DNA of 64,000 nt, taken from the sequence record MW822008.1; one strand, given 5' to 3'. Positions 20,723 through 55,552 of this stretch are shown here, in pieces (position 1 is the stretch's first letter; each line of letters starts with the position of its first letter). A program made the position numbers and the translations under genes. Under the pieces are notes generated by a model. It ran no database searches. It was not told where the DNA came from and saw only the letters and a program-made list of their open reading frames with translations.

Positions 20723-21088
20723 ATGAATCCATCATCTAATAAATGTGGTACTTCCTTTAATGTAGAATGGTTGTTTTTTAAACCTACATCTACTATAAAA
20801 TCATTCATTGCTGATATCACTGAAGCACCTGACACCCTTGTATCAGTTGTTAGCAACAATAACGAAATGGTATTTTCTATTGATGAAAATCAATATGCAG
20901 ATATCTATTCATTGATTCGTATAAAAAACTTAGTTGTACTGTCCGAGAAAGCGTTCGCAAAAGAAGCGAAGAAATGGGATTTTAAACTTCCTATTGAATT
21001 GGTACGTGAAATACAAAAATTGGGATGTACTACTATTGAGAATTGTAAAGACTCACGTGCTACTGGGAATATTTCATTTGAAGTATAA
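20723..21088 (+). CDS. Hypothetical protein
   Basis: ORF, GAGG RBS. Confidence 0.75.
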   Translation: MNPSSNKCGTSFNVEWLFFKPTSTIKSFIADITEAPDTLVSVVSNNNEMVFSIDENQYADIYSLIRIKNLVVLSEKAFAKEAKKWDFKLPIELVREIQKLGCTTIENCKDSRATGNISFEV

Positions 21089-21111: not shown

Positions 21112-21140
21112 TTGACATCATGCCTCACATGGGGTATGAT
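21112..21140 (+). promoter_or_regulatory. sigma70 promoter heading the family A array
   Basis: TTGACA-17-TATGAT. Confidence 0.75.
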
Positions 21141-21174
21141 GTTTTTTCACATATGAACCTATGGATTTTATCCT

Positions 21175-21372
21175 ATGCGTATTTTAACTAAAGAACAGCA
21201 CCACGAAAGACTTATCAATAACATGGCTATGATAATGTATAAGTCCCATGACCGTGGTATTGCCTATAAGCGTGAATTAATTATGGCACTATTCATTGGA
21301 ACTAACTTTCAGGAAAGGTATGTCAACGATTGGATTTGGTATTTAATTGAAGATATAACGAGTAAACTATGA
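21175..21372 (+). CDS. Family A paralog
   Basis: FIGTNFQE. Confidence 0.85.
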   Translation: MRILTKEQHHERLINNMAMIMYKSHDRGIAYKRELIMALFIGTNFQERYVNDWIWYLIEDITSKL

Positions 21373-21569
21373 AAATGCGTATTTTAAATAAAGAAGAATA
21401 TCAATCACTGTTACGTAAAAACTTCACAAAGATTTATAATACAGACACACACGTAGAACGAATGGAGTTATACCTTTTGATTACTTTGGGAACTAACTAT
21501 CAGGAAAGATGGGTGATTCAATATATGGATACATTGAAAAATAAAATATTGTCCACGAGGAAACAATGA
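21369..21569 (+). CDS. Family A paralog
   Basis: TLGTNYQE. Confidence 0.85.
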   Translation: MKMRILNKEEYQSLLRKNFTKIYNTDTHVERMELYLLITLGTNYQERWVIQYMDTLKNKILSTRKQ

Positions 21570-21775
21570 AAACTATAACACGAACCCAATCATACGGTCT
21601 TATCTTGAAATACATGGACTTAATGGTGGATATCAGCAAAGACCTTCCTAAAACTGAAATTGAAGTTGCAAGAGCAGAGATCCGCATGTTGGCTGTACTG
21701 AACACAAACCATCAGGAAGATTATGTTGAAGAATGGATTCGATTTTTAATAGAAGATATAAAGAGTAAATTATGA
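21566..21775 (+). CDS. Family A paralog
   Basis: VLNTNHQE. Confidence 0.85.
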   Translation: MKTITRTQSYGLILKYMDLMVDISKDLPKTEIEVARAEIRMLAVLNTNHQEDYVEEWIRFLIEDIKSKL

Positions 21776-21987
21776 TTATTATAGAAAACTCATATCAATA
21801 TACTGAACGCATCGCTGCCAGACAACTTGAAATCCTCATAATATACGAAGAGACTTCTGATTTAAACTTAGCCGAGGTATTGGAAAATGATATACTATTG
21901 GGTGCATTCTTAGGAACAGACTATCAGAAGTATTATGAGGAAAAGTATTTGTCATCTCTTGAGAAATATATCAGGAGCAAATTATGA
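21772..21987 (+). CDS. Family A paralog
   Basis: FLGTDYQK. Confidence 0.85.
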   Translation: MIIIENSYQYTERIAARQLEILIIYEETSDLNLAEVLENDILLGAFLGTDYQKYYEEKYLSSLEKYIRSKL

Positions 21988-22196
21988 TTTTTTTAACACC
22001 AGAAGAATATAAGAAACGTTTCAATTCCGCACAGGGTGAAATCTTACTTATATACCTTTCAAATGCAGACCTTAACTTATCAAGGGTATTAGAAAAAGAT
22101 TTACTTATGGGTGCATTCCTTGATACAGACTTTCAGGTGTATTATGTAGGGGAATACTTAATTGCACTCCAGAAATACATTAAGAGCAAACTATGA
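21984..22196 (+). CDS. Family A paralog
   Basis: FLDTDFQV. Confidence 0.85.
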   Translation: MIFLTPEEYKKRFNSAQGEILLIYLSNADLNLSRVLEKDLLMGAFLDTDFQVYYVGEYLIALQKYIKSKL

Positions 22197-22411
22197 AACA
22201 TTTAAGTAATTACGAGAAGAATAAAATTATCGTTGCTGCAATAAACAAATATTTTACACTTCCTCACACAGAAGGTTTATGTGTAAGGGAACACAGGATA
22301 AACACCACCGATATACGCATGATGGCTGTACTGGGGACGAACTTTCAGGAAGAGTATGTTGTTGCACACATAGTTGCCCTCACTGATTTAATAAGGGACA
22401 AATGCAAATGA
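22193..22411 (+). CDS. Family A paralog
   Basis: VLGTNFQE. Confidence 0.85.
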   Translation: MKHLSNYEKNKIIVAAINKYFTLPHTEGLCVREHRINTTDIRMMAVLGTNFQEEYVVAHIVALTDLIRDKCK

Positions 22412-22716
22412 AACACTTAACTGATGATGAATTTGAAACTATAATTCGTAAACTAACCCCCATCACAAGGATAGTCTACGGTGACCCCAGCCTTACATGG
22501 AACCAAATGCGAGCTAAAGTTAATGAGCTATGGTTGCTGTACTTTATGGGGACTCAATATCAAGATAAGTTTTGCACAGAATATATCGAACAATTAACGA
22601 ATGTTATACAGGATAAACTAGATGATTATTTGCTCACAAAACATGAAGATTTTATCAGGAGTGGAGTATCAGACTGCCCTCTTCTCTCTTCTAAACACCC
22701 TCCGCACGAACAATAA
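22402..22716 (+). CDS. Family A paralog with C-terminal extension
   Basis: FMGTQYQD. Confidence 0.8.
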   Translation: MQMKHLTDDEFETIIRKLTPITRIVYGDPSLTWNQMRAKVNELWLLYFMGTQYQDKFCTEYIEQLTNVIQDKLDDYLLTKHEDFIRSGVSDCPLLSSKHPPHEQ

Positions 22717-22894
22717 ACTTTATAATTCCCGTGAAGCTGATATCGTCAACGCTGATGTATATCTTAATAAATTCATAGGGACTAACTATCAAGAACTGTT
22801 CACTCTACGATATATCGCTGCATTGAGAAACGAAATATCAGATAAAACCCGTCAAGCCAGAAGAGAATGGAATAAACAATGCGACACAGACTAA
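22643..22894 (+). CDS. Family A paralog
   Basis: FIGTNYQE; start trimmed to MKILS. Confidence 0.8.
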   Translation: MKILSGVEYQTALFSLLNTLRTNNKLYNSREADIVNADVYLNKFIGTNYQELFTLRYIAALRNEISDKTRQARREWNKQCDTD

Positions 22895-23130
22895 ATCACA
22901 AAATGTATTGTAAACTATTACAGACACTGGCACAGAAACACTATGACACTGTATCTGAAATATTACCCTATGATATCATGCGTTTAATTCATAGTGAGGC
23001 AGAGATGCTTGTACTGATGACAGGCACTGATAAAAAAGCAATTGCCAAATCAATAGATATGTTCATCGAAGCACAATGTCAACACATTAGAACCGAGATA
23101 TGGAGACGAGAGAATGATAACACTAAATGA
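22879..23130 (+). CDS. Family A paralog (divergent)
   Basis: MTGTDKK. Confidence 0.7.
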   Translation: MRHRLNHKMYCKLLQTLAQKHYDTVSEILPYDIMRLIHSEAEMLVLMTGTDKKAIAKSIDMFIEAQCQHIRTEIWRRENDNTK

Positions 23131-23329
23131 GTTTCAGTATCATTGGAGGTTACAAACTATCAAATCAAAAGTGTATAGTATTGTGTTAAACAAATCTATT
23201 GCACAAGAGGACAAATGTGTTATAATAGCTGAAATGAAGTTGGGTGCTTTCGTAGGGACAAACTATCAAAACATCTACACTGACGTATTGTTAAGTGCCT
23301 TACGTAACAAGGTGGTATCCAAAATATGA
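23114..23329 (+). CDS. Family A paralog
   Basis: FVGTNYQN. Confidence 0.85.
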   Translation: MITLNEFQYHWRLQTIKSKVYSIVLNKSIAQEDKCVIIAEMKLGAFVGTNYQNIYTDVLLSALRNKVVSKI

Positions 23330-23544
23330 GAAATTTACAAGGCTTTGAATACATCAGACTCCTGAAAACATGCACCAGCAGAAGGAAAATCTTATCAAGC
23401 GATAAGAGCATCCAAGCTAACCTTAAGCACGCACTAGTAACTGAACTCTATGTAGGTGCACTCTTAGGCACAAACTATCAACAAATGTATGTAGATCTAT
23501 GGATTGACGCTCTACAGAAAGAGGTTAAAAGTAAATGCAAATGA
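23326..23544 (+). CDS. Family A paralog
   Basis: LLGTNYQQ. Confidence 0.85.
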   Translation: MRNLQGFEYIRLLKTCTSRRKILSSDKSIQANLKHALVTELYVGALLGTNYQQMYVDLWIDALQKEVKSKCK

Positions 23545-23753
23545 TTAATTTAAGTAAAGACGAATTTTATGTTATACTGGCGAAAACTTATCCAGCACGT
23601 AAGGCCGTTTATGATAGTCACATTATTGAACCCTCAAAGAAGTTGATTTTAGTAAATGAGATAAAGATGCTTTCAGTCTTAGGAACAAACTATCAAGAGA
23701 ATGCTGTACTGATGTTAATTGATGCCCTCCAGCGAGAGGTTAAACGTAAATGA
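23535..23753 (+). CDS. Family A paralog
   Basis: VLGTNYQE. Confidence 0.85.
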   Translation: MQMINLSKDEFYVILAKTYPARKAVYDSHIIEPSKKLILVNEIKMLSVLGTNYQENAVLMLIDALQREVKRK

Positions 23754-23980
23754 AAATGATTAATTTAACTTACCATGAATATCAAAAACGTTTAAATGCA
23801 TCCAGAGATATAAGGATTCAAATATTCAATAACAAAAGATTGAAGCCTGATATCAGGAAAATCAAAATCATAGAAGCCGTGTTGTGCAACTTCCTAGGGA
23901 CTAACTATCAGGAAGGTAAGGTAGAAAACTATCTTATAGAACTCATGAATAGTATTGAAAATAAATGTAAGGGTAATTAA
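23750..23980 (+). CDS. Family A paralog
   Basis: FLGTNYQE. Confidence 0.85.
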   Translation: MKMINLTYHEYQKRLNASRDIRIQIFNNKRLKPDIRKIKIIEAVLCNFLGTNYQEGKVENYLIELMNSIENKCKGN

Positions 23981-23981
23981 C

Positions 23982-24221
23982 ATGAAAATGATTAAATTAT
24001 CTCAAGCAAAATATAAAGAACGCCTGGTAAAAATTGCACCTGGACTTAATGAAATCCATCACGGAGAAGTCATTAAACACGGAAATAAGATGATTATGAA
24101 ACTTGAGTTAAAGGTGGGTGCATTCATAGGAACAAACTATCAGGAGTATTATGTAGATGAATACATAATCGCACTTAAGAGATACATTGGAAGAAAACTA
24201 TATCTACAAACTAAAGAATAG
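23982..24221 (+). CDS. Family A paralog
   Basis: FIGTNYQE; start trimmed. Confidence 0.85.
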   Translation: MKMIKLSQAKYKERLVKIAPGLNEIHHGEVIKHGNKMIMKLELKVGAFIGTNYQEYYVDEYIIALKRYIGRKLYLQTKE

Positions 24222-24250
24222 TATTGAAAATAAATGTAAGGGTAATTAAC

Positions 24251-24514
24251 ATGCAAATGATCAATTTAAGTAAAGATGAATATACCGAGCGTATGACAAA
24301 AATTACGCACAAACGTAATACAATCTATCACAACCCAGAAATTCAACACAGTAAGAAAATGATTATGATGCGTGAGTTAAAGATGGGTGTATTCTTAGGA
24401 ACAAACTATCAAGATACAGAAGTAAATCGCTTAATCGCGGAGTTGCTACTGGAAATCAGAGGTAAGCTGTACTTTCATCAAATGACCCAACCACTGAGGT
24501 GTACTAAGAAATGA
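24251..24514 (+). CDS. Family A paralog
   Basis: FLGTNYQD; start trimmed. Confidence 0.85.
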   Translation: MQMINLSKDEYTERMTKITHKRNTIYHNPEIQHSKKMIMMRELKMGVFLGTNYQDTEVNRLIAELLLEIRGKLYFHQMTQPLRCTKK

Positions 24515-24726
24515 TCAACATCACATTGCAAGAAAGATTCATCCGAATCAACTATGCAATTACCAAATTAGATGCTACTATAGGATTCCAAAGTCTACCA
24601 TACAAAACCAGATTGTTATTAGAGTGTGAAGCTAAGTTGGGTGTACTATTAGGGACGCAACACCAACAACGATATGTGGAAATCTGGATTGATCTTTTAA
24701 CCCAGGATGTACATGAGAGAATGTAA
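24511..24726 (+). CDS. Family A paralog
   Basis: LLGTQHQQ. Confidence 0.85.
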   Translation: MINITLQERFIRINYAITKLDATIGFQSLPYKTRLLLECEAKLGVLLGTQHQQRYVEIWIDLLTQDVHERM

Positions 24727-24981
24727 ATGCAAAATGAAATGATATACTTAACCTATAATGAATACGTCGAGAGATTAGTTCGTGCCAAGAGATATACCAA
24801 TAAACGTCCAATTGACCTAAACCAAACCCCTGCCGAAAGGAGTGCAGAAGTTTTATTCCAATCACTACCATACCTTCTTGGAACTGATAGACAAGAGGAA
24901 TATGTTGCACGTATGATTAGATATCTTAAAATCACTATTAAGGAAAAAGTAAATGCAAATGAAATACTTAACAGACGATGA
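24727..24981 (+). CDS. Family A paralog
   Basis: LLGTDRQE. Confidence 0.85.
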   Translation: MQNEMIYLTYNEYVERLVRAKRYTNKRPIDLNQTPAERSAEVLFQSLPYLLGTDRQEEYVARMIRYLKITIKEKVNANEILNRR

Positions 24982-25204
24982 GTTAAAAGAACGACTAATT
25001 AAATCCAGAAAACTTACAAATCAACTTCCAAACGACACAAACAAGTCACATGCCGAAAGGAGTGCAGAAGTTTTATACATTCAACTCATGTACTTTCTTG
25101 GCACTGACAGACAAGAGTATTACATTGAAAGTATGCTTCGATATCTTAAATTCTCTATAAAGGAAAAGATACATGCTCAAGAATTTAAAAATCCTAACAG
25201 TTAA
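24953..25204 (+). CDS. Family A paralog
   Basis: FLGTDRQE; shares AERSAEVL with the previous gene. Confidence 0.85.
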   Translation: MQMKYLTDDELKERLIKSRKLTNQLPNDTNKSHAERSAEVLYIQLMYFLGTDRQEYYIESMLRYLKFSIKEKIHAQEFKNPNS

Positions 25205-25415
25205 TGAATATCATACGATTGTAATGAAAACTAATAGTGCAATTTCTAAAAAATCAAACCCCAAGTACATACTGGAACACACATTCGAAGAACGTCAATT
25301 AGCTTTAGTTGAAGCAAAACTTCTTGCACTCCTAGGAACAAACTATCAGGAAGAATACATCAGAAAACTAATATACCTTTTAACTAAACATATAAGAAAA
25401 AGAAAAAATGCATGA
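25173..25415 (+). CDS. Family A paralog
   Basis: LLGTNYQE. Confidence 0.85.
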   Translation: MLKNLKILTVNEYHTIVMKTNSAISKKSNPKYILEHTFEERQLALVEAKLLALLGTNYQEEYIRKLIYLLTKHIRKRKNA

Positions 25416-25642
25416 AACACTTGACAGATGATGAACATGGACTTATAGTAATGGATGTAATCAACATCGAATACAAAAAGTTGATACGCTACCGTTGTTA
25501 TGAAGATAAGCAACTCGTTCTAGCAGAACAGAAGTTGTTTCGACTCTTAAACACAAACTTCCAAGCACAATACGAAGAATCGTATATGTACCTTTTGGCG
25601 AGGAAAGCAAAAAGAGATTATGAAAATTTTAAGCAAAGGTGA
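25412..25642 (+). CDS. Family A paralog
   Basis: LLNTNFQA. Confidence 0.85.
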   Translation: MKHLTDDEHGLIVMDVINIEYKKLIRYRCYEDKQLVLAEQKLFRLLNTNFQAQYEESYMYLLARKAKRDYENFKQR

Positions 25643-25841
25643 TTCAGTAATATTACTTATAGAGAGTTCAAGTAAATTCTTAAACATAACACTGTCTGAT
25701 ATAGATGAAGATGACAAAGAAGTACTGAGAGCAGATTTAAGAGTACTGTTACATATCGGAACAAACCTACAAGAAGAATATGTAGAGTGCTACATTAATG
25801 AACTTAAAGAATCAGTACTGAGAAAATGCAAATGCAAATGA
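25620..25841 (+). CDS. Family A paralog
   Basis: HIGTNLQE. Confidence 0.85.
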   Translation: MKILSKGDSVILLIESSSKFLNITLSDIDEDDKEVLRADLRVLLHIGTNLQEEYVECYINELKESVLRKCKCK

Positions 25842-26065
25842 AAATCATTTCACCCACAGAATACAACCAACTATTAAGTAGTTTAATTCTAAAGCTGTTT
25901 ATAACAAAAAGCATGAAATTACCAGATGATGAAATAAGTATTCTAGTAAGTGAAATCTATGTTCAAGCTACACTAGGGACTAACTATCAAGAATGCAATA
26001 TTAATGATTACATCAATGAACTAAAAAGGTTTATCCAATGCAAATGCGAATCATTACCGAAGTAG
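25826..26065 (+). CDS. Family A paralog
   Basis: TLGTNYQE. Confidence 0.85.
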   Translation: MQMQMKIISPTEYNQLLSSLILKLFITKSMKLPDDEISILVSEIYVQATLGTNYQECNINDYINELKRFIQCKCESLPK

Positions 26066-26280
26066 AATACCTAACAATCATAAATGGACTGTTTTCGAAG
26101 TTATTTGCCATTAACACATCAAAACTTCCAGATTCTGATAAAATTATTAAGTTAAATGAAATCTACGTTCAAGCTACTCTAGGAACAAACTATCAAGAAG
26201 CCAATGTGTATAATTACATTAATACACTCAAAAGGGTAATACAATTAAAATGCACAGACAGCACACACACAAACCCCTAG
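26038..26280 (+). CDS. Family A paralog
   Basis: TLGTNYQE; shares EIYVQATLGTNYQE with the previous gene. Confidence 0.85.
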   Translation: MQMRIITEVEYLTIINGLFSKLFAINTSKLPDSDKIIKLNEIYVQATLGTNYQEANVYNYINTLKRVIQLKCTDSTHTNP

Positions 26281-26480
26281 GAACAGCAGAATACATTGAA
26301 CTAATGGCTGCAAACTTCTCATCCTTTAAGAAACTGATGCAAGAATCAAAGAATGATTTAGAATATCACATCAAAAGTTCAGATTTAAGATTGCTACTCA
26401 CTCTAGGAACAGATTCCCAAGAGCGATTTGTCAATGAGCATATTAGAGCACTTTTAAATGGCATCAGGAATAAACTATGA
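26250..26480 (+). CDS. Family A paralog
   Basis: TLGTDSQE. Confidence 0.8.
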   Translation: MHRQHTHKPLGTAEYIELMAANFSSFKKLMQESKNDLEYHIKSSDLRLLLTLGTDSQERFVNEHIRALLNGIRNKL

Positions 26481-26693
26481 AGGAAATATCAAATCAAGAG
26501 TACTTGGCACTATTCAGGAAGAATAATCACAAATATATGGCACTTGATTCAAGAACTGATATAAGTGAACTTGAAAAAAAATCTTTTGCGTTCAGAGATG
26601 ATAGTACTGACACTCTTAGGAACACAGCATCAAGAGAGAACTGTTAATTCACACATAGGGATTCTTATGCAGATAGTTCAGGAAAAGATATGA
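26477..26693 (+). pseudogene. Family A paralog frameshifted at an A8 run
   Basis: MKEISNQEY...ELEKK, then LLRSEMIVLTLLGTQHQER... in the next frame; 217 nt = 72 codons + 1; A-run at 26574-26581. Confidence 0.8.
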
Positions 26694-26911
26694 GAATCAT
26701 AACACAACAAGATATTCTTAAGTTCACAAGGGTTCATGCATCTGAATTTGATGCTATATTATCAAAAAGTTACAACAACCCTTATACACAAGATGTACAT
26801 TACAGTGAATTATGGATGTATATACTTTTAGGTACAAATAAGCAAGAGCAAGCCGTACAGAAGTATTTGACAGCTTTACGTGATGCTACTGCTAATGGAG
26901 TATGTGTTTAA
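26690..26911 (+). CDS. Family A paralog
   Basis: LLGTNKQE. Confidence 0.85.
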   Translation: MRIITQQDILKFTRVHASEFDAILSKSYNNPYTQDVHYSELWMYILLGTNKQEQAVQKYLTALRDATANGVCV

Positions 26912-26912
26912 T

Positions 26913-27155
26913 ATGAAAGTACTGACAGAAATAGAAATGTATCATAGATTTAATAAGTACTATCATTTACTTAAGCCTATACAGAGGATTAAATGTCCAT
27001 TTGAAGAGAAACAGGTTTTAATCTATGAGCACAAGTTCTTTGTATCATTAGGTACAGATCAACAAGAGTACTATTTGACGTTGTACTTGATTACATTAAT
27101 AGATTTAATTCACTATAAAACCAAACAAGCTAATAAAGAGAAATATGAAAACTAA
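26913..27155 (+). CDS. Family A paralog
   Basis: SLGTDQQE; start trimmed. Confidence 0.85.
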   Translation: MKVLTEIEMYHRFNKYYHLLKPIQRIKCPFEEKQVLIYEHKFFVSLGTDQQEYYLTLYLITLIDLIHYKTKQANKEKYEN

Positions 27156-27489
27156 TATACAACTCAAGGTATATAAATCATTTGAACATACATATATCAA
27201 AAGTAGTCTATGTAGAGATGTAATGGATTACAAGGGTAAGCCATTCACAATTACCTATGATTCTTATGTTAGTGATTTATATATATCATTTGTTAATTAC
27301 GAAAATAAAATATACAAGCACGTTGATATTAAAGATTTAAGTACTTTATCACCAGAGGAATACTTTCAGGAATCATTAGTATGGGATTTAGAGTTTCCTA
27401 TGCCATTAGTACATAAGATGATAGTACTAATGAAAGAATCTAAACAGGAGCCTAATGGTGATTATGAAGAACACACAGTTGAGTACTGA
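27145..27489 (+). CDS. Family B paralog
   Basis: EEYFQESLVWD. Confidence 0.85.
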   Translation: MKTNIQLKVYKSFEHTYIKSSLCRDVMDYKGKPFTITYDSYVSDLYISFVNYENKIYKHVDIKDLSTLSPEEYFQESLVWDLEFPMPLVHKMIVLMKESKQEPNGDYEEHTVEY

Positions 27490-27850
27490 TAATATTAAGA
27501 GTTATACAAGCTCAAGTACTGTGACAATCGAAGTGAATTCTATTAATGCTGGTAATGCAGTAGATAAGTTCTTTATTGCTCAAGGGTACAGGAAAGATAT
27601 TCATCAATATTGTTCAGTATATGGGGAGTACAATAGTACTGAAGATATAATTTATTGGTCAACACATCAAGATTATCTAACTAAAATTGGCGTTCCAGAT
27701 GTTAGTACTTTATCTGAAGAAGAATACTTTCAGTACAGCTTAGTACATGATGTACCTATACCTTTAGGGTTAATCAAGGGTATACAGGAAGAGGTTCATA
27801 AGCTTAAATCCATGAGTAAAGGTACTTTCATTAGAACAGTGCAATACTAG
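27455..27850 (+). CDS. Family B paralog
   Basis: EEEYFQYSLVHD. Confidence 0.85.
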   Translation: MVIMKNTQLSTDNIKSYTSSSTVTIEVNSINAGNAVDKFFIAQGYRKDIHQYCSVYGEYNSTEDIIYWSTHQDYLTKIGVPDVSTLSEEEYFQYSLVHDVPIPLGLIKGIQEEVHKLKSMSKGTFIRTVQY

Positions 27851-27851
27851 C

Positions 27852-27880
27852 TTGACAGTACTTTTCATTACTGATATAGT
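27852..27880 (+). promoter_or_regulatory. sigma70 promoter
   Basis: TTGACA-17-TGnTATAGT. Confidence 0.7.
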
Positions 27881-27911: not shown

Positions 27912-28157
27912 ATGTTAAATTTTTTAAATTTCCTTATCGTCTTGTGTATTGTTCTTGGGATTGCACCATTTGTATTGTATTTCATGGATTCAGATGAAAT
28001 GCAGAAGATGAATTGCACAAGGACAGGACAGAGTAGAGTAGAGACGATTCTTATGCCTGTTACGGTTATTGTTAACAACATGCCCATTACGAACATGGTC
28101 CCTACCCTAACGACAACGTACCAGTACTCTTGTGCTGACGGAGAGAGGTGGAGATGA
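27912..28157 (+). CDS. Membrane-anchored hypothetical protein
   Basis: N-terminal hydrophobic helix. Confidence 0.7.
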   Translation: MLNFLNFLIVLCIVLGIAPFVLYFMDSDEMQKMNCTRTGQSRVETILMPVTVIVNNMPITNMVPTLTTTYQYSCADGERWR

Positions 28158-28465
28158 AATTTAATATAGCAAAAACATCTAATATATGTATATTTGGTTA
28201 TGCCGAAGAGTTGGGTGATATTGACATTCTTTTGTACAAAAAGGATGGTGTTATGCATTTCAAGTACCAGGATGAAGAGGCAGACAATTATCTTTTACCT
28301 AATTTAGTACAAATGCAGGAAGATGAATTATTCCAGTACAGCTTAGTATACGACATTGATATTTGCACGATGCCAGTACTAATTAGTATTCAAAAAGTGA
28401 TGCTCGATATGTATGATAAGCTAATACAAGGTATGTCAGGGAGGATCATTGAAATTGACATATAA
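28148..28465 (+). CDS. Family B paralog
   Basis: EDELFQYSLVYD. Confidence 0.85.
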   Translation: MEMKFNIAKTSNICIFGYAEELGDIDILLYKKDGVMHFKYQDEEADNYLLPNLVQMQEDELFQYSLVYDIDICTMPVLISIQKVMLDMYDKLIQGMSGRIIEIDI

Positions 28466-28661
28466 GAATATACCTAATGCATATGAAATGAAGTACAGGG
28501 AGTTTATTAAAAATGTACACACCGATCCTTTTAATATCAAAATATCAGATTTTGATGTATTATTTTATCTAGGGACAATAGCACAGGATCAATGCGTTGA
28601 TAAGCTCATATGGTCCTTGAAAATGGAGATACAATGCAGACCCAAATATATAAAAAGGTAG
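28449..28661 (+). CDS. Family A paralog (outlier)
   Basis: YLGTIAQD; TTG start with GAGG RBS. Confidence 0.8.
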   Translation: MKLTYKNIPNAYEMKYREFIKNVHTDPFNIKISDFDVLFYLGTIAQDQCVDKLIWSLKMEIQCRPKYIKR

Positions 28662-28897
28662 ATTCTTTATTGTACGCTTCAAAGTACAGGGATTTTTGTT
28701 TACGAGGGGGAGAGGAAGATTTCTCTCTGAGATTATCTGAATTTAATATGTTATTTTATCTTGGTACAAAAGATCAAGAAGATACAGTACAGAAATTTAT
28801 CAAGCACCTTGAACAAAAAATTCATATGCAAATTTTTATGCTTAAGGTACATAATGAGATAAACAAATATGAACCCAACAATAGTACAGGATCTTAA
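28634..28897 (+). CDS. Family A paralog (outlier)
   Basis: YLGTKDQE. Confidence 0.8.
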   Translation: MQTQIYKKVDSLLYASKYRDFCLRGGEEDFSLRLSEFNMLFYLGTKDQEDTVQKFIKHLEQKIHMQIFMLKVHNEINKYEPNNSTGS

Positions 28898-41571: not shown

Positions 41572-42104
41572 TGAAAGTTAACATCAATGACTTTGATGCA
41601 TTACAAGATTTATCAAAAAAGATTCGCACCATTGTACCAGTACTCAAAAAATGCAGTACTGGTTTAATCGATCCTAGTACTGTTGTTAATGAGAAGTACA
41701 ATTTTCATTATGTATTACAGGGTACTGGGGCATTCCAGAAGTGTGAGGTGCGTGAGACACACGTAATTGATACATCATTGTTTTCTATTGGTGCACCTGT
41801 GTCGAATAATACTATTTTCCTAGACAACGCTGGAAATATTCAACAATTAACATTTAAGAAAAGGAAAAAGAACAATAACATTGGTGTGTATGCGATGAAG
41901 TGGGGGCAACCTGATTTGAAGCGTGAAATTCACATCCCTAAGTACAATTACAATGCATTTGACGAACAGTGTTTTCAACTATCGTGTACTGACCCTGACT
42001 ATGCTATCATTCAGTTCTATATGGAATTGCAGATTGCATTTAACAGTAATTTGTATATTAACTTATTGGCGATGAACATCGATGAAGTATTCAAAAACAT
42101 TTAA
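41568..42104 (+). CDS. Family B paralog
   Basis: DEQCFQLSCTD. Confidence 0.8.
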   Translation: MMKVNINDFDALQDLSKKIRTIVPVLKKCSTGLIDPSTVVNEKYNFHYVLQGTGAFQKCEVRETHVIDTSLFSIGAPVSNNTIFLDNAGNIQQLTFKKRKKNNNIGVYAMKWGQPDLKREIHIPKYNYNAFDEQCFQLSCTDPDYAIIQFYMELQIAFNSNLYINLLAMNIDEVFKNI

Positions 42105-42300
42105 TCGAATTGAATACATGAGAACTGTGAGTGCAGTGTGGGACATATGGTTCACTACTAAACCAAAAATGGATTACCATGACTTTAAGCTCTTGTTCTT
42201 CGTTGGCTCTAACAAACAGGATGTTGCAATGAAGGGTTATATTCAGCACTTACAGGAACTAATCCAGAAGAGAATATATGAAAATAATAGACCAAAATGA
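42082..42300 (+). CDS. Family A paralog (outlier)
   Basis: FVGSNKQD. Confidence 0.8.
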   Translation: MKYSKTFNRIEYMRTVSAVWDIWFTTKPKMDYHDFKLLFFVGSNKQDVAMKGYIQHLQELIQKRIYENNRPK

Positions 42301-42469
42301 CATTGCTAAACTATTCAATATATATTCTACTAGAATGATGCAAACAGACTCATATAGTACTGAATTCAAAGAGTTGAAAGTACTGATGTACTTAGGAACC
42401 CAATACCAAGAACAAGTTATTTTAGAATATATTAATTCGTTGAAGAAGGATATCCGTTATGTACGATGA
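42278..42469 (+). CDS. Family A paralog (outlier)
   Basis: YLGTQYQE. Confidence 0.85.
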   Translation: MKIIDQNDIAKLFNIYSTRMMQTDSYSTEFKELKVLMYLGTQYQEQVILEYINSLKKDIRYVR

Positions 42470-44908: not shown

Positions 44909-45385
44909 ATGTCCAAAGACCTATCATTTAGCAATGCACAAAAAATAGCAAAAGACATTATCAGGGTTTATAAATTCCTTGCGAATGTTACTGAAGATTT
45001 TTTCGTGGGGGAACATAAAGTTATTAAACGAAATGGATACCTTTCCTTTATGGATGGGTTACTCTATAGTTCAGATGAATCAACTTGTAGCATTAGAGTA
45101 CTTGATGAAGTACCAAGTGGTGATTTTATTTCATACCATTTTCCAAGTTCAGATAATTTCAAATACTACAATCATCTTCTTATAAATGAAGCATTTGATA
45201 CGATTGTAATTAACACTGAAGAAGAGTTCTTCCAGTACAGTACTGTGTATCCAGAGAGGATTGTTTTCAGTTCAGTGATTTACACTGCCCTTAAAAATGA
45301 ACTAAATTCCGATAGTGATCATTACTACTTGGACCTGAACAATGTCGATTGTATTATTGAGTACATGGAGAAAAATGGTTTATGA
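44909..45385 (+). CDS. Family B paralog
   Basis: EEEFFQYSTVY. Confidence 0.85.
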   Translation: MSKDLSFSNAQKIAKDIIRVYKFLANVTEDFFVGEHKVIKRNGYLSFMDGLLYSSDESTCSIRVLDEVPSGDFISYHFPSSDNFKYYNHLLINEAFDTIVINTEEEFFQYSTVYPERIVFSSVIYTALKNELNSDSDHYYLDLNNVDCIIEYMEKNGL

Positions 45386-45876
45386 TTACTACAGAATATG
45401 ATTACTATGGTGTTTTAGAATTTACAGAAAATATCTATCGCATTGCAAAGGAGTTCAGAAGTCCTAAGCCTTTTGGTGGTATGTTTCAATACGATGAGTT
45501 CAGTTCATCTAAAGGAAGACTAGCATTTACTAATGTTAGAGGTAATCAAATCTACGCGGAGTACTTTGATGATAATGACTTTCATTACAAAGCCGAATAC
45601 ATTTCATATTGCCCTGGGTCTGATTTGAAGATTAATATTGATACCTTTAGAGATTCAGTGCTTGTCCCTTATAGTGAGTTAGTTTTCATGACAGAAGAAA
45701 TGTACTTTCAAGAGTCTTGTATTCATGATGTAAAAGTACTTAATGCTATGTTATTTTATGGTGCACTACTTCATCATTACAAATACAAACAACGATTCTT
45801 TTTAGATTTAGTAGTATACTATAAATGCGTGGATTATTTGAATGCAAAATACGACAACAATTCAGTACATGACTGA
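45382..45876 (+). CDS. Family B paralog
   Basis: EEMYFQESCIHD. Confidence 0.85.
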   Translation: MITTEYDYYGVLEFTENIYRIAKEFRSPKPFGGMFQYDEFSSSKGRLAFTNVRGNQIYAEYFDDNDFHYKAEYISYCPGSDLKINIDTFRDSVLVPYSELVFMTEEMYFQESCIHDVKVLNAMLFYGALLHHYKYKQRFFLDLVVYYKCVDYLNAKYDNNSVHD

Positions 45877-54724: not shown

Positions 54725-55191
54725 ATATTTTAGGAAACATCGATACTGCAAATTATTTTATCCAGGACGCACTGTTCAATACAGTTCAACAAGGATTAGA
54801 AGTTCGTCATAACGTTTACCAAGGTGATGGTTATTTCGTTGATATTGTTGAGGCACGAAAGAATACGTTTAATGTTAACATTACAACACTGGGTAGACAG
54901 AACATTGCACGAATTTTAGTAAGTAAAGATGAAATTGTATTGAGATACAGTGCTAAGTTTATGTTGACTTATAAGAAAAAAACTGATATGTTCAGTACTA
55001 ATTTATTTGATGAGCCATTTGACCTTGAAGATATTGAAGCTACTTTCTTTACTCAAAGTACTATGGTAAAATACACTGATGTTCAATTTTCTGCTGATGT
55101 AATGTCAGAAACATTACAAATGATCAAGGTATTATTTTATGCATTTGAGCAATTTAGAGAAGAAAGAAACAAGGTTAACAACCACAGATGA
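54718..55191 (+). CDS. Family B paralog (divergent)
   Basis: EATFFTQSTMV. Confidence 0.65.
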   Translation: MLDILGNIDTANYFIQDALFNTVQQGLEVRHNVYQGDGYFVDIVEARKNTFNVNITTLGRQNIARILVSKDEIVLRYSAKFMLTYKKKTDMFSTNLFDEPFDLEDIEATFFTQSTMVKYTDVQFSADVMSETLQMIKVLFYAFEQFREERNKVNNHR

Positions 55192-55204
55192 ACTAATAGA
55201 GGCG

Positions 55205-55552
55205 ATGACTAAGGAGTCAAAATACCACAAAGGGATTCGTCTATATTTTATAGATATTGGTTCAATGGAAGGCATATACATTTATGGTTCACAATCTTTA
55301 TCTTATGATGTAATGCCAAAAAAACATGTAAAAATCTTTTTAGGTTCAAATAAAAAAACTTTCTTGACAATTAATGATAAAAACGTTATTATGAATTCGT
55401 TGGGTCATGATAAGGTGGAAATTGATCTAAACACACTGGAGGATATTGATTTTTTTCAATACGAGTGTTTAGGTGTTGACTTACATGGCATTAGTAGCGA
55501 TATGATAAAATCATTAATCAAATATTTCGAAGGTGTTCATAAATGTATCTAA
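55205..55552 (+). CDS. Family B paralog
   Basis: DIDFFQYECL; start uncertain. Confidence 0.7.
   Translation: MTKESKYHKGIRLYFIDIGSMEGIYIYGSQSLSYDVMPKKHVKIFLGSNKKTFLTINDKNVIMNSLGHDKVEIDLNTLEDIDFFQYECLGVDLHGISSDMIKSLIKYFEGVHKCI

Follow-up and report, generated by a model that had tools for sequence, protein, structure and literature searches.

Escherichia phage BF17 (MW822008.1), a giant Escherichia coli phage classed as Asteriusvirus, carries within bases 1-64000 of its record (the 64,000 nucleotides analysed here, referred to as the window) a stretch at positions 21112-27155 which raises the question of what use a phage may have for 27 consecutive copies of one small gene. The protein family encoded there is called family A in the following. 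Nucleotide comparison revealed 86-97% identity of this stretch to 35 further records, which all come from jumbo phages of Escherichia or Salmonella that belong to the PBECO4/121Q/phAPEC6 group, and every gene deposited for the array region in the BF17 record is labelled "hypothetical protein". It is suggested here that the family A array may provide a repertoire of small binding proteins which act early and inside the cell, in taking over the host or in countering its defences, a reading to which we give an even chance of being correct, whereby early timing, intracellular action, binding and host targets are all what we infer.

Composition of the family A array

Open reading frame (ORF) listing, motif scan and profile searches identified 27 consecutive plus-strand units of one family at 21175-27155, and together with two outlying pairs BF17 possesses 31 family A copies, which bears out the count of 27 tandem paralogs plus two outlying pairs given in an earlier reading of this DNA (the original prediction). 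The phrog_4148 profile (74 positions) is matched by 30 of the 31 BF17 copies, among them 26 of the 27 array units (E 4e-27 to 8e-6), and by ten of ten tested proteins (E 3e-22 to 2e-6). When the whole 383,493-bp genome was searched in six frames with this profile, 31 matches were obtained, all within the window, of which 27 locate to the array (unit 25 being recovered as two halves) and four to the outliers (at 28461, 28724, 42166 and 42278); no further family A copies were found elsewhere in the genome by this search. Both outlying pairs are real members of the family, with E-values of 1e-6 and 2e-5 for the pair 28449/28634 and of 4e-4 and 5e-17 for the pair 42082/42278. The deposited BF17 record lacks units 8 and 23 as well as the outlier at 28449.

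Two units deserve separate mention. Unit 9 (22879-23130) is divergent, as the GTD motif is present and the following Gln is missing, and it alone fails to match phrog_4148; the sole profile to align it was that of the array itself, for which unit 9 had served as training sequence, and in most relatives the slot of unit 9 shows 81-100% conservation. Unit 25 is broken by one extra A (a run of eight A in BF17 versus seven in phAPEC6 and JP4), with intact versions residing in phAPEC6, JP4 and vB_Ec-M-J. Since the run has seven A in phAPEC6 and JP4 and the extra base is absent from a near-identical strain in public run X1, the break is a slippage mutation or a sequencing error and not an old pseudogene.

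Operon organization and promoter

Of the 26 junctions of the array 22 are overlaps, at three the genes abut with a distance of 0-1 nt, and a spacer of 29 nt is found at the remaining one, in line with the earlier statement that nearly all junctions overlap. The overlaps comprise eleven 4-nt ATGA overlaps (a count which includes the 25/26 junction, read from the C-half frame of unit 25), two 10-nt ATGCAAATGA overlaps, eight of 16-32 nt and one of 74 nt. The exact sequence AAATGCAAATG is found at four junctions and its 9-nt core ATGCAAATG at six, all within the array, with chance expectations in the window of 0.13 and 1.3, respectively; hence the junction sequence pointed out in the original prediction is real, but its occurrence at "many" junctions was overstated, given that it marks 4 of 26 (the core 6). 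AAATGCAAATG encodes K-C-K-stop in one frame and M-Q-M in the following frame, and is therefore a version of the ATGA overlap that offers two possible start codons. Most units possess purine-rich Shine-Dalgarno-like stretches within their last codons, which is why conservation of the C-terminal I/V-x-x-K motif may partly serve the next cistron.

A sigma-70-type promoter (TTGACA-17-TATGAT, 11 of 12 matches) was identified at 21112..21140 on the plus strand, 35 nt upstream of unit 1. A sigma-70-like promoter resides at the same place in eight of eight relatives examined, where it occurs as two alternative modules: BF17 and A4 share one of them, which arrived with an inserted upstream gene, and in the other relatives the promoter is of the TTGACT type, with a GGAG ribosome-binding site behind it. 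No convincing plus-strand terminator with a strong stem was found inside the array. Taken together, junction anatomy and the promoter and terminator scan fit the translational coupling within one operon that had been proposed before.

Two further near-consensus sigma-70 matches (11 of 12) locate to 25421-25449, within the array at the start of unit 20, and to 27852-27880, just past the array and before the gene at 27912, the latter having an extended -10 TG. Both may be chance matches, as promoter-like sites are no commoner than in shuffled sequence.

Genome position, timing and the virion

In the relative vB_Ec-M-J the direct terminal repeat is annotated at 1-21525 and the array starts at 21624, i.e., approximately 100 bp past the repeat, and terminal repeats of 20,668-20,993 bp were determined experimentally for Sharanji and fEgEco12. 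The array is hence the first operon of the unique region. For PA5oct, a distant relative and the sole member of the wider clade with RNA sequencing data, genes of the long repeat were found to be early and dependent on host RNA polymerase, which by analogy suggests early timing for the BF17 array.

Such timing would bear upon the possibility that family A proteins reside inside the virion, either as part of a capsid inner body (capsid-internal proteins being also named in the original prediction) or as ejected proteins. Other jumbo phages such as phiKZ build inner bodies from paralog families, which counts for this explanation, as does the inner body of unknown composition that the literature describes for phAPEC6. 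The available virion data come from the literature on this very phage, which is 97% identical to BF17: mass spectrometry identified 62 virion proteins among which the family A orthologs gp467c-gp489c are absent, although a protein of 4.7 kDa was detected (Table 1, PMC7247149), and this absence weighs against the capsid-internal option. The early-type promoter and the position of the array additionally speak against a late structural role, and a location within the virion is considered extremely improbable.

Predicted fold and sequence conservation

The 30 intact copies share a mean pairwise identity of 26%, with G48, T49, Q52 and L63 being nearly invariant. AlphaFold2, run on the family alignment with unit 11 as the modelled copy, predicted a four-helix protein with a predicted local distance difference test score (pLDDT) of 97.4 and a predicted template modelling score (pTM) of 0.81, the helices of which comprise residues 6-14, 17-25, 31-45 and 52-71, with a one-residue bridge between residue 2 and T49. 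The earlier description of the proteins as small and helical is hence borne out by the model (pLDDT 97). Conservation was derived from 105 non-redundant units of nine phages, and revealed a hydrophobic core (L4, Y9, L13, I23, V36, L43, L47, V56, Y59, I60, L63, I67) next to a conserved polar set (T/S5, E8, E40, G48, T49, N50, Q52, E53, K70). The conserved C-half motif of the original prediction was right; its assignment of variability to the N-half has to be narrowed, since the N-terminal M-K-x-L-T-x-x-E-Y is also conserved and columns 14-35 are the truly hypervariable part, carrying almost no information.

Neither sequence nor structure searches connected family A to a known domain. The phrog_4148 entry (PHROGs v4) is annotated as unknown function, the best Pfam-A score was 16.5 bits (cut-offs being 27 or more), NCBIfam gave chance matches of single members only, and the PADLOC defence models gave isolated single-member matches with E 0.001 or weaker. 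The PDB sequence profile search reached a best E-value of 0.36 and Foldseek against the PDB one of 2.2, VIA-align against 48,161 chains gave a best Z of 6.8, which is within the noise band stated for helical models, the viral model library returned family members only, and among ESM Atlas look-alikes there was no usable match. These searches agree with the previous view of a diversified family without recognisable domain, and a match to a known structural family, which had been named beforehand as an outcome that would refute the original prediction, was not found among the fold and sequence searches; a weak or missing structure match, however, does not prove the predicted fold to be new. The combination of a small four-helix protein with one constant and one variable face is reminiscent of colicin and pyocin immunity proteins, which we take to be an analogy only: such proteins were not retrieved by Pfam (E up to 1), nor were they among the Foldseek and VIA-align matches listed.

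The charge of the proteins, which range in pI from 4.4 to 9.9 with a median of 8.7, and among which many copies have a net charge of +4 to +8, would be compatible with small regulators that bind DNA or associate with the nucleoid and act on transcription of the phage or the host. The L-G-T-x-x-Q turn, with a long helix behind it, is loosely reminiscent of helix-turn-helix signatures. A precedent is given by Bacillus phage G, likewise a jumbo phage with a lineage-specific tandem expansion of a tiny protein (approximately 35 zinc-ribbon copies), for which such a role was suggested (PMC7824862), the difference being that family A is a predicted four-helix domain without cysteine motif. Seven of the 30 aligned copies are acidic, however (pI 4.4-5.3), the Pfam, Foldseek, VIA-align and PDB profile results hold no helix-turn-helix entry, the Foldseek and VIA-align lists hold no other DNA-binding fold, and neither Pfam nor NCBIfam nor the PDB sequence search gave a match of this kind, so that a role in DNA binding is judged to be unlikely.

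Selection and turnover of units

Comparison of the orthologous arrays revealed approximately 17-19 units for JNE01, 20 for A4, 23 for 121Q, 26 for vB_Ec-M-J, 27 for both BF17 and ph0011, 28 for phAPEC6 and 29 for JP4 and WPEC3; CMSTMSU was excluded from these counts, since many frameshifts interrupt its units and the record is flagged as unverified. Slots are largely syntenic, and identities are mosaic across relatives. Between BF17 and vB_Ec-M-J matched units are 50-100% identical, one unit has no counterpart, and the synonymous divergence (dS) ranges from 0 to 0.96 between neighbouring units. Against JNE01 the median best match within the array is 33%, i.e., at paralog level, whereas three genes at the repeat end are 94-98% identical. 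These patterns indicate that the phages differ mainly because entire units have been exchanged, gained or lost. Concerted evolution was considered and rejected, since same-slot orthologs are far more alike than paralogs within one genome.

In public run X1 several assembled contigs covering 21761-24200 contain joints which skip 252 or 451 bases or return by 421 or 668 bases. These fit strains differing by one to three units, and may as well be chimeras between paralogs formed upon assembly.

Analysis of dN/dS (nonsynonymous over synonymous divergence, omega) by region, as proposed in the original prediction, revealed purifying selection throughout. The pooled ratio is 0.30-0.38 in five genome comparisons; within ortholog lines the paralog-hypervariable columns 14-35 have an omega of 0.31-0.43 (upper 95% bound not above 0.59) and the 23 conserved columns one of 0.18-0.25. 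As purifying selection includes columns 14-35, each copy is a maintained gene with a surface of its own that is likewise maintained.

This finding bears upon the sole published comment on the array (Hua et al.), whose point, growth of the genome by tandem duplication to match a larger capsid, fits the idea that the copies are genome filler, meaning duplication leftovers that have no individual functions. While the free variation of copy number between phages is consistent with filler, the copies are old (26% identity) yet each slot retains an open frame from phage to phage, purifying selection acts on all regions, and the only broken copy results from a one-base homopolymer change in a single record; filler is thus regarded as very unlikely.

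The juxtaposition of a constant and a copy-specific part invites another explanation, namely that family A proteins are adaptors whose polar cluster docks all copies on one host or phage machine, with the variable face bringing in a different substrate or site each time, in a way comparable to substrate-adaptor families that have expanded in large viruses of eukaryotes. The polar residues that are conserved (T/S5, E8, E40, G48-T49-N50, Q52, E53, K70) as opposed to the hypervariable helix 2 and loop, the modelled bridge between residue 2 and T49, which joins the starts of helices 1 and 4, and the maintenance of each variable face by selection would all be explained in this way. Yet capping of helices and stabilisation of the small fold may be all that the polar residues do, the array has no candidate partner gene linked to it, and the two natural fusions, P0171 of UB-like phages and ORF362 of Klebsiella phage RaK2, carry orphan extensions which give no clue, so that an adaptor function is considered improbable. 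Its most elaborate form, a modular targeting system in which approximately 30 exchangeable adaptors share a constant polar dock on one machine and choose copy-specific targets at the start of infection, seems quite doubtful; tailed phages are not known to possess a modular adaptor targeting system of such kind.

Proposed function of the array

The preferred reading, that of an early intracellular repertoire of small binders, assumes that host RNA polymerase would transcribe the array as one early operon from the promoter at 21112 once the left genome end has entered the cell. The transcript would subsequently be translated as a chain of coupled cistrons, each of which would give rise to a soluble four-helix protein of approximately 8 kDa, which would remain inside the infected cell instead of being incorporated into virions. 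Common to all copies are the hydrophobic core and a small polar cluster (T/S5, E8, G48-T49-N50, Q52, E53) at the place where helices 1 and 4 begin in the model, and the face predicted to be formed by helix 2, the next loop and the start of helix 3 is copy-specific and preserved by selection in each copy. Each binder may hence be aimed at a different host protein or variant thereof, serving takeover, the blocking of defence or both, and related phages differ in that entire units have been gained, lost or replaced.

Several observations weigh against this proposal. The Pfam, NCBIfam, PADLOC, Foldseek, VIA-align and PDB profile searches revealed no similarity of the proteins to any known inhibitor or binder. 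Positive selection was found neither in the array nor in columns 14-35, and a direct arms race might leave such a sign. The conserved polar cluster could instead reflect one common partner or a purely structural role, and mass spectrometry of virions can miss small proteins of low abundance. Contigs from wastewater metatranscriptomes cover the array patchily and at low depth, which may result from DNA carry-over; the evidence from public runs consists of assembled contigs only. The probability which remains after the readings given here goes to functions outside of them.

Individual units and neighbouring genes

All units described in the following reside on the plus strand. Unit 1 (21175..21372, 65 aa; phrog_4148 E 4e-20) is followed by five units that are each joined to their predecessor by an ATGA overlap: unit 2 (21369..21569, 66 aa), unit 3 (21566..21775, 69 aa; LNTNHQ variant), unit 4 (21772..21987, 71 aa), unit 5 (21984..22196, 70 aa; LDTDFQ variant) and unit 6 (22193..22411, 72 aa). 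Unit 7 (22402..22716, 104 aa) starts at a ATGCAAATGA junction, has a profile-aligned start at 22408 and possesses a C-terminal tail, with which unit 8 (22643..22894, 83 aa) overlaps by 74 nt. Next come the divergent unit 9 (22879..23130, 83 aa; GTDKK, no Gln, missed by phrog_4148), unit 10 (23114..23329, 71 aa), unit 11 (23326..23544, 72 aa), which was used for the structure model, and unit 12 (23535..23753, 72 aa; profile start 23541), again with a ATGCAAATGA junction. Unit 13 (23750..23980, 76 aa) has an ATGA overlap, unit 14 (23982..24221, 79 aa) is the best PHROG profile match (E 4e-27), and unit 15 (24251..24514, 87 aa) has the sole junction with a spacer (29 nt).

In the second half of the array, unit 16 (24511..24726, 71 aa; ATGA overlap) precedes unit 17 (24727..24981, 84 aa), unit 18 (24953..25204, 83 aa) and unit 19 (25173..25415, 80 aa), after which unit 20 (25412..25642, 76 aa), a LNTNFQ variant, follows with an ATGA overlap. 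Unit 21 (25620..25841, 73 aa), unit 22 (25826..26065, 79 aa; profile start 25838), unit 23 (26038..26280, 80 aa), unannotated in the deposited record, and unit 24 (26250..26480, 76 aa) lead to the frameshifted unit 25 (26477..26693), whose frame changes near 26574, with the N-half frame at 26477-26647 and the C-half frame at 26565-26693. Unit 26 (26690..26911, 73 aa) and the final unit 27 (26913..27155, 80 aa) complete the array. The first outlying pair consists of a 70-aa copy with TTG start (28449..28661; E 1.2e-6), which is unannotated in the record, and an 87-aa copy (28634..28897; E 2.4e-5, C-half only); the second consists of a 72-aa copy with the GSNKQ variant (42082..42300; E 4e-4, C-half only) and a 63-aa copy (42278..42469; E 5e-17).

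In BF17 the terminal repeat is separated from the array by an additional gene of 121 aa (20723-21088), at the place of which A4 has a different gene of 272 aa. Directly after the array, and flanking the outlying pair 28449/28634, members of a second expanded small-protein family of the same region were identified, which share the signature acidic-x-(Y/F)FQ-x-S-L-V-x-D, unrelated to that of family A, and locate to 27145-27489, 27455-27850, 28148-28465, 45382-45876 and 55139-55552, all on the plus strand. Between the array and the first outlying pair, the gene at 27912-28157 encodes a protein of 81 aa whose N-terminal segment is strongly hydrophobic and likely serves as a membrane anchor; near this place UB-like phages carry the 269-aa P0171 instead.

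Distribution across phages

An exhaustive profile search among 1.84 billion representative proteins returned only 104 clusters, of which all named ones belong to Asteriusvirus phages or to a contig of approximately 350 kb in an E. coli assembly. A restriction of family A to Asteriusvirus is ruled out by 12 copies in Klebsiella phage RaK2 (Alcyoneusvirus) and at least 18 in an uncultured contig. The RaK2 copies were found as six-frame matches, arranged in pairs and triplets just past a repeat-like region, and plainly carry the L-G-T-N/D-x-Q signature. The uncultured contig is a 101-kb metagenome sequence whose units form mostly one tandem run and whose flanks have approximately 75% identity to RaK2, K64-1 and BF17 over less than 20% of the query. 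Because of these copies in RaK2 and the 101-kb contig, family A is older than the genus Asteriusvirus. In CBB and GAP32 (Mimasvirus) as well as Munch and fHe-Yen9-04 (Eneladusvirus) there was no family A match at E 0.01 or better.

Fusions of family A to other sequences were observed twice. In P0171 (269 aa) the first 65 residues are a family A domain, fused to approximately 200 orphan residues, for which Pfam gave no match and PHROG a marginal one (E 0.007); a search of 5.8 billion proteins returned no relative of this part, BF17 lacks a homolog of it, and a single-sequence model of P0171 was unusable (pLDDT 33). RaK2 ORF362 (L021:5170-5535) is a natural fusion as well, in which the family A domain is followed by an extension of approximately 50 residues. 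RaK2 has one more match at 244878-245057 of its record, where no gene is annotated. P0001, a 154-aa two-unit fusion from one metagenome contig, most simply results from a one-base indel in an A-run at the junction of units 19 and 20, and was for this reason discarded as evidence for heteromers.

In the uncultured Rak2-like contig a gene of a ParE-like toxin family (L014:1293-1544) resides in the repeat-like region upstream of the family A array, and in K64-1 and Muenster a YafQ-like ribonuclease toxin is annotated in the corresponding region.

Relation to known gene families and significance

The existence of the array is already in print and the family is already catalogued (phrog_4148). For phage 121Q, ">30 very similar genes" were mentioned in one sentence to illustrate how genomes grow by duplication (Hua et al. 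2017, PMC5646251), which bears out the statement in the original prediction that tandem paralog arrays have been reported for 121Q-like phages. The array meant there is almost certainly the same locus as that of BF17, 121Q having 23 units in the orthologous array plus two outliers in the stretch examined; the genes were called very similar, however, whereas the copies analysed here are only approximately 26% identical, and protein, timing and variation, which are addressed here, were not analysed in that report. A 2026 review repeats this remark and the phAPEC6 paper alludes to the array, and the family is not taken up in recent papers describing the genomes of fEgEco12 and Sharanji. The phrog_4148 entry comprises the same family without function, structure or context, to which the present work adds array organisation, predicted fold, selection pattern and distribution.

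Among other viruses, the multigene families (MGF) of African swine fever virus (ASFV) and the host-range families of poxviruses consist of diverged, non-structural paralogs in variable terminal regions. They resemble family A in that the paralogs adjoin a terminal repeat and that closely related isolates differ in copy number and content; there is no relationship between the viruses, hosts or proteins, though, and the role in host range or immune evasion is experimental in those families and is what we infer for family A.

Many Asteriusvirus phages are now being isolated as candidates for phage therapy directed at pathogenic E. coli, and more than 80% of their genes are without known function. 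Family A accounts for approximately 6 kb and 30 genes of this, at a place that is probably expressed first. If its members are specific binders of host proteins, the array would be a ready-made library of small, stable four-helix inhibitors and a likely determinant of the strains that a given phage can infect. Family A moreover represents a clean natural case of a virus multigene family, with old copies that are each conserved and are exchanged as whole units, and the question why large viruses keep multigene families becomes testable in a tractable E. coli system.

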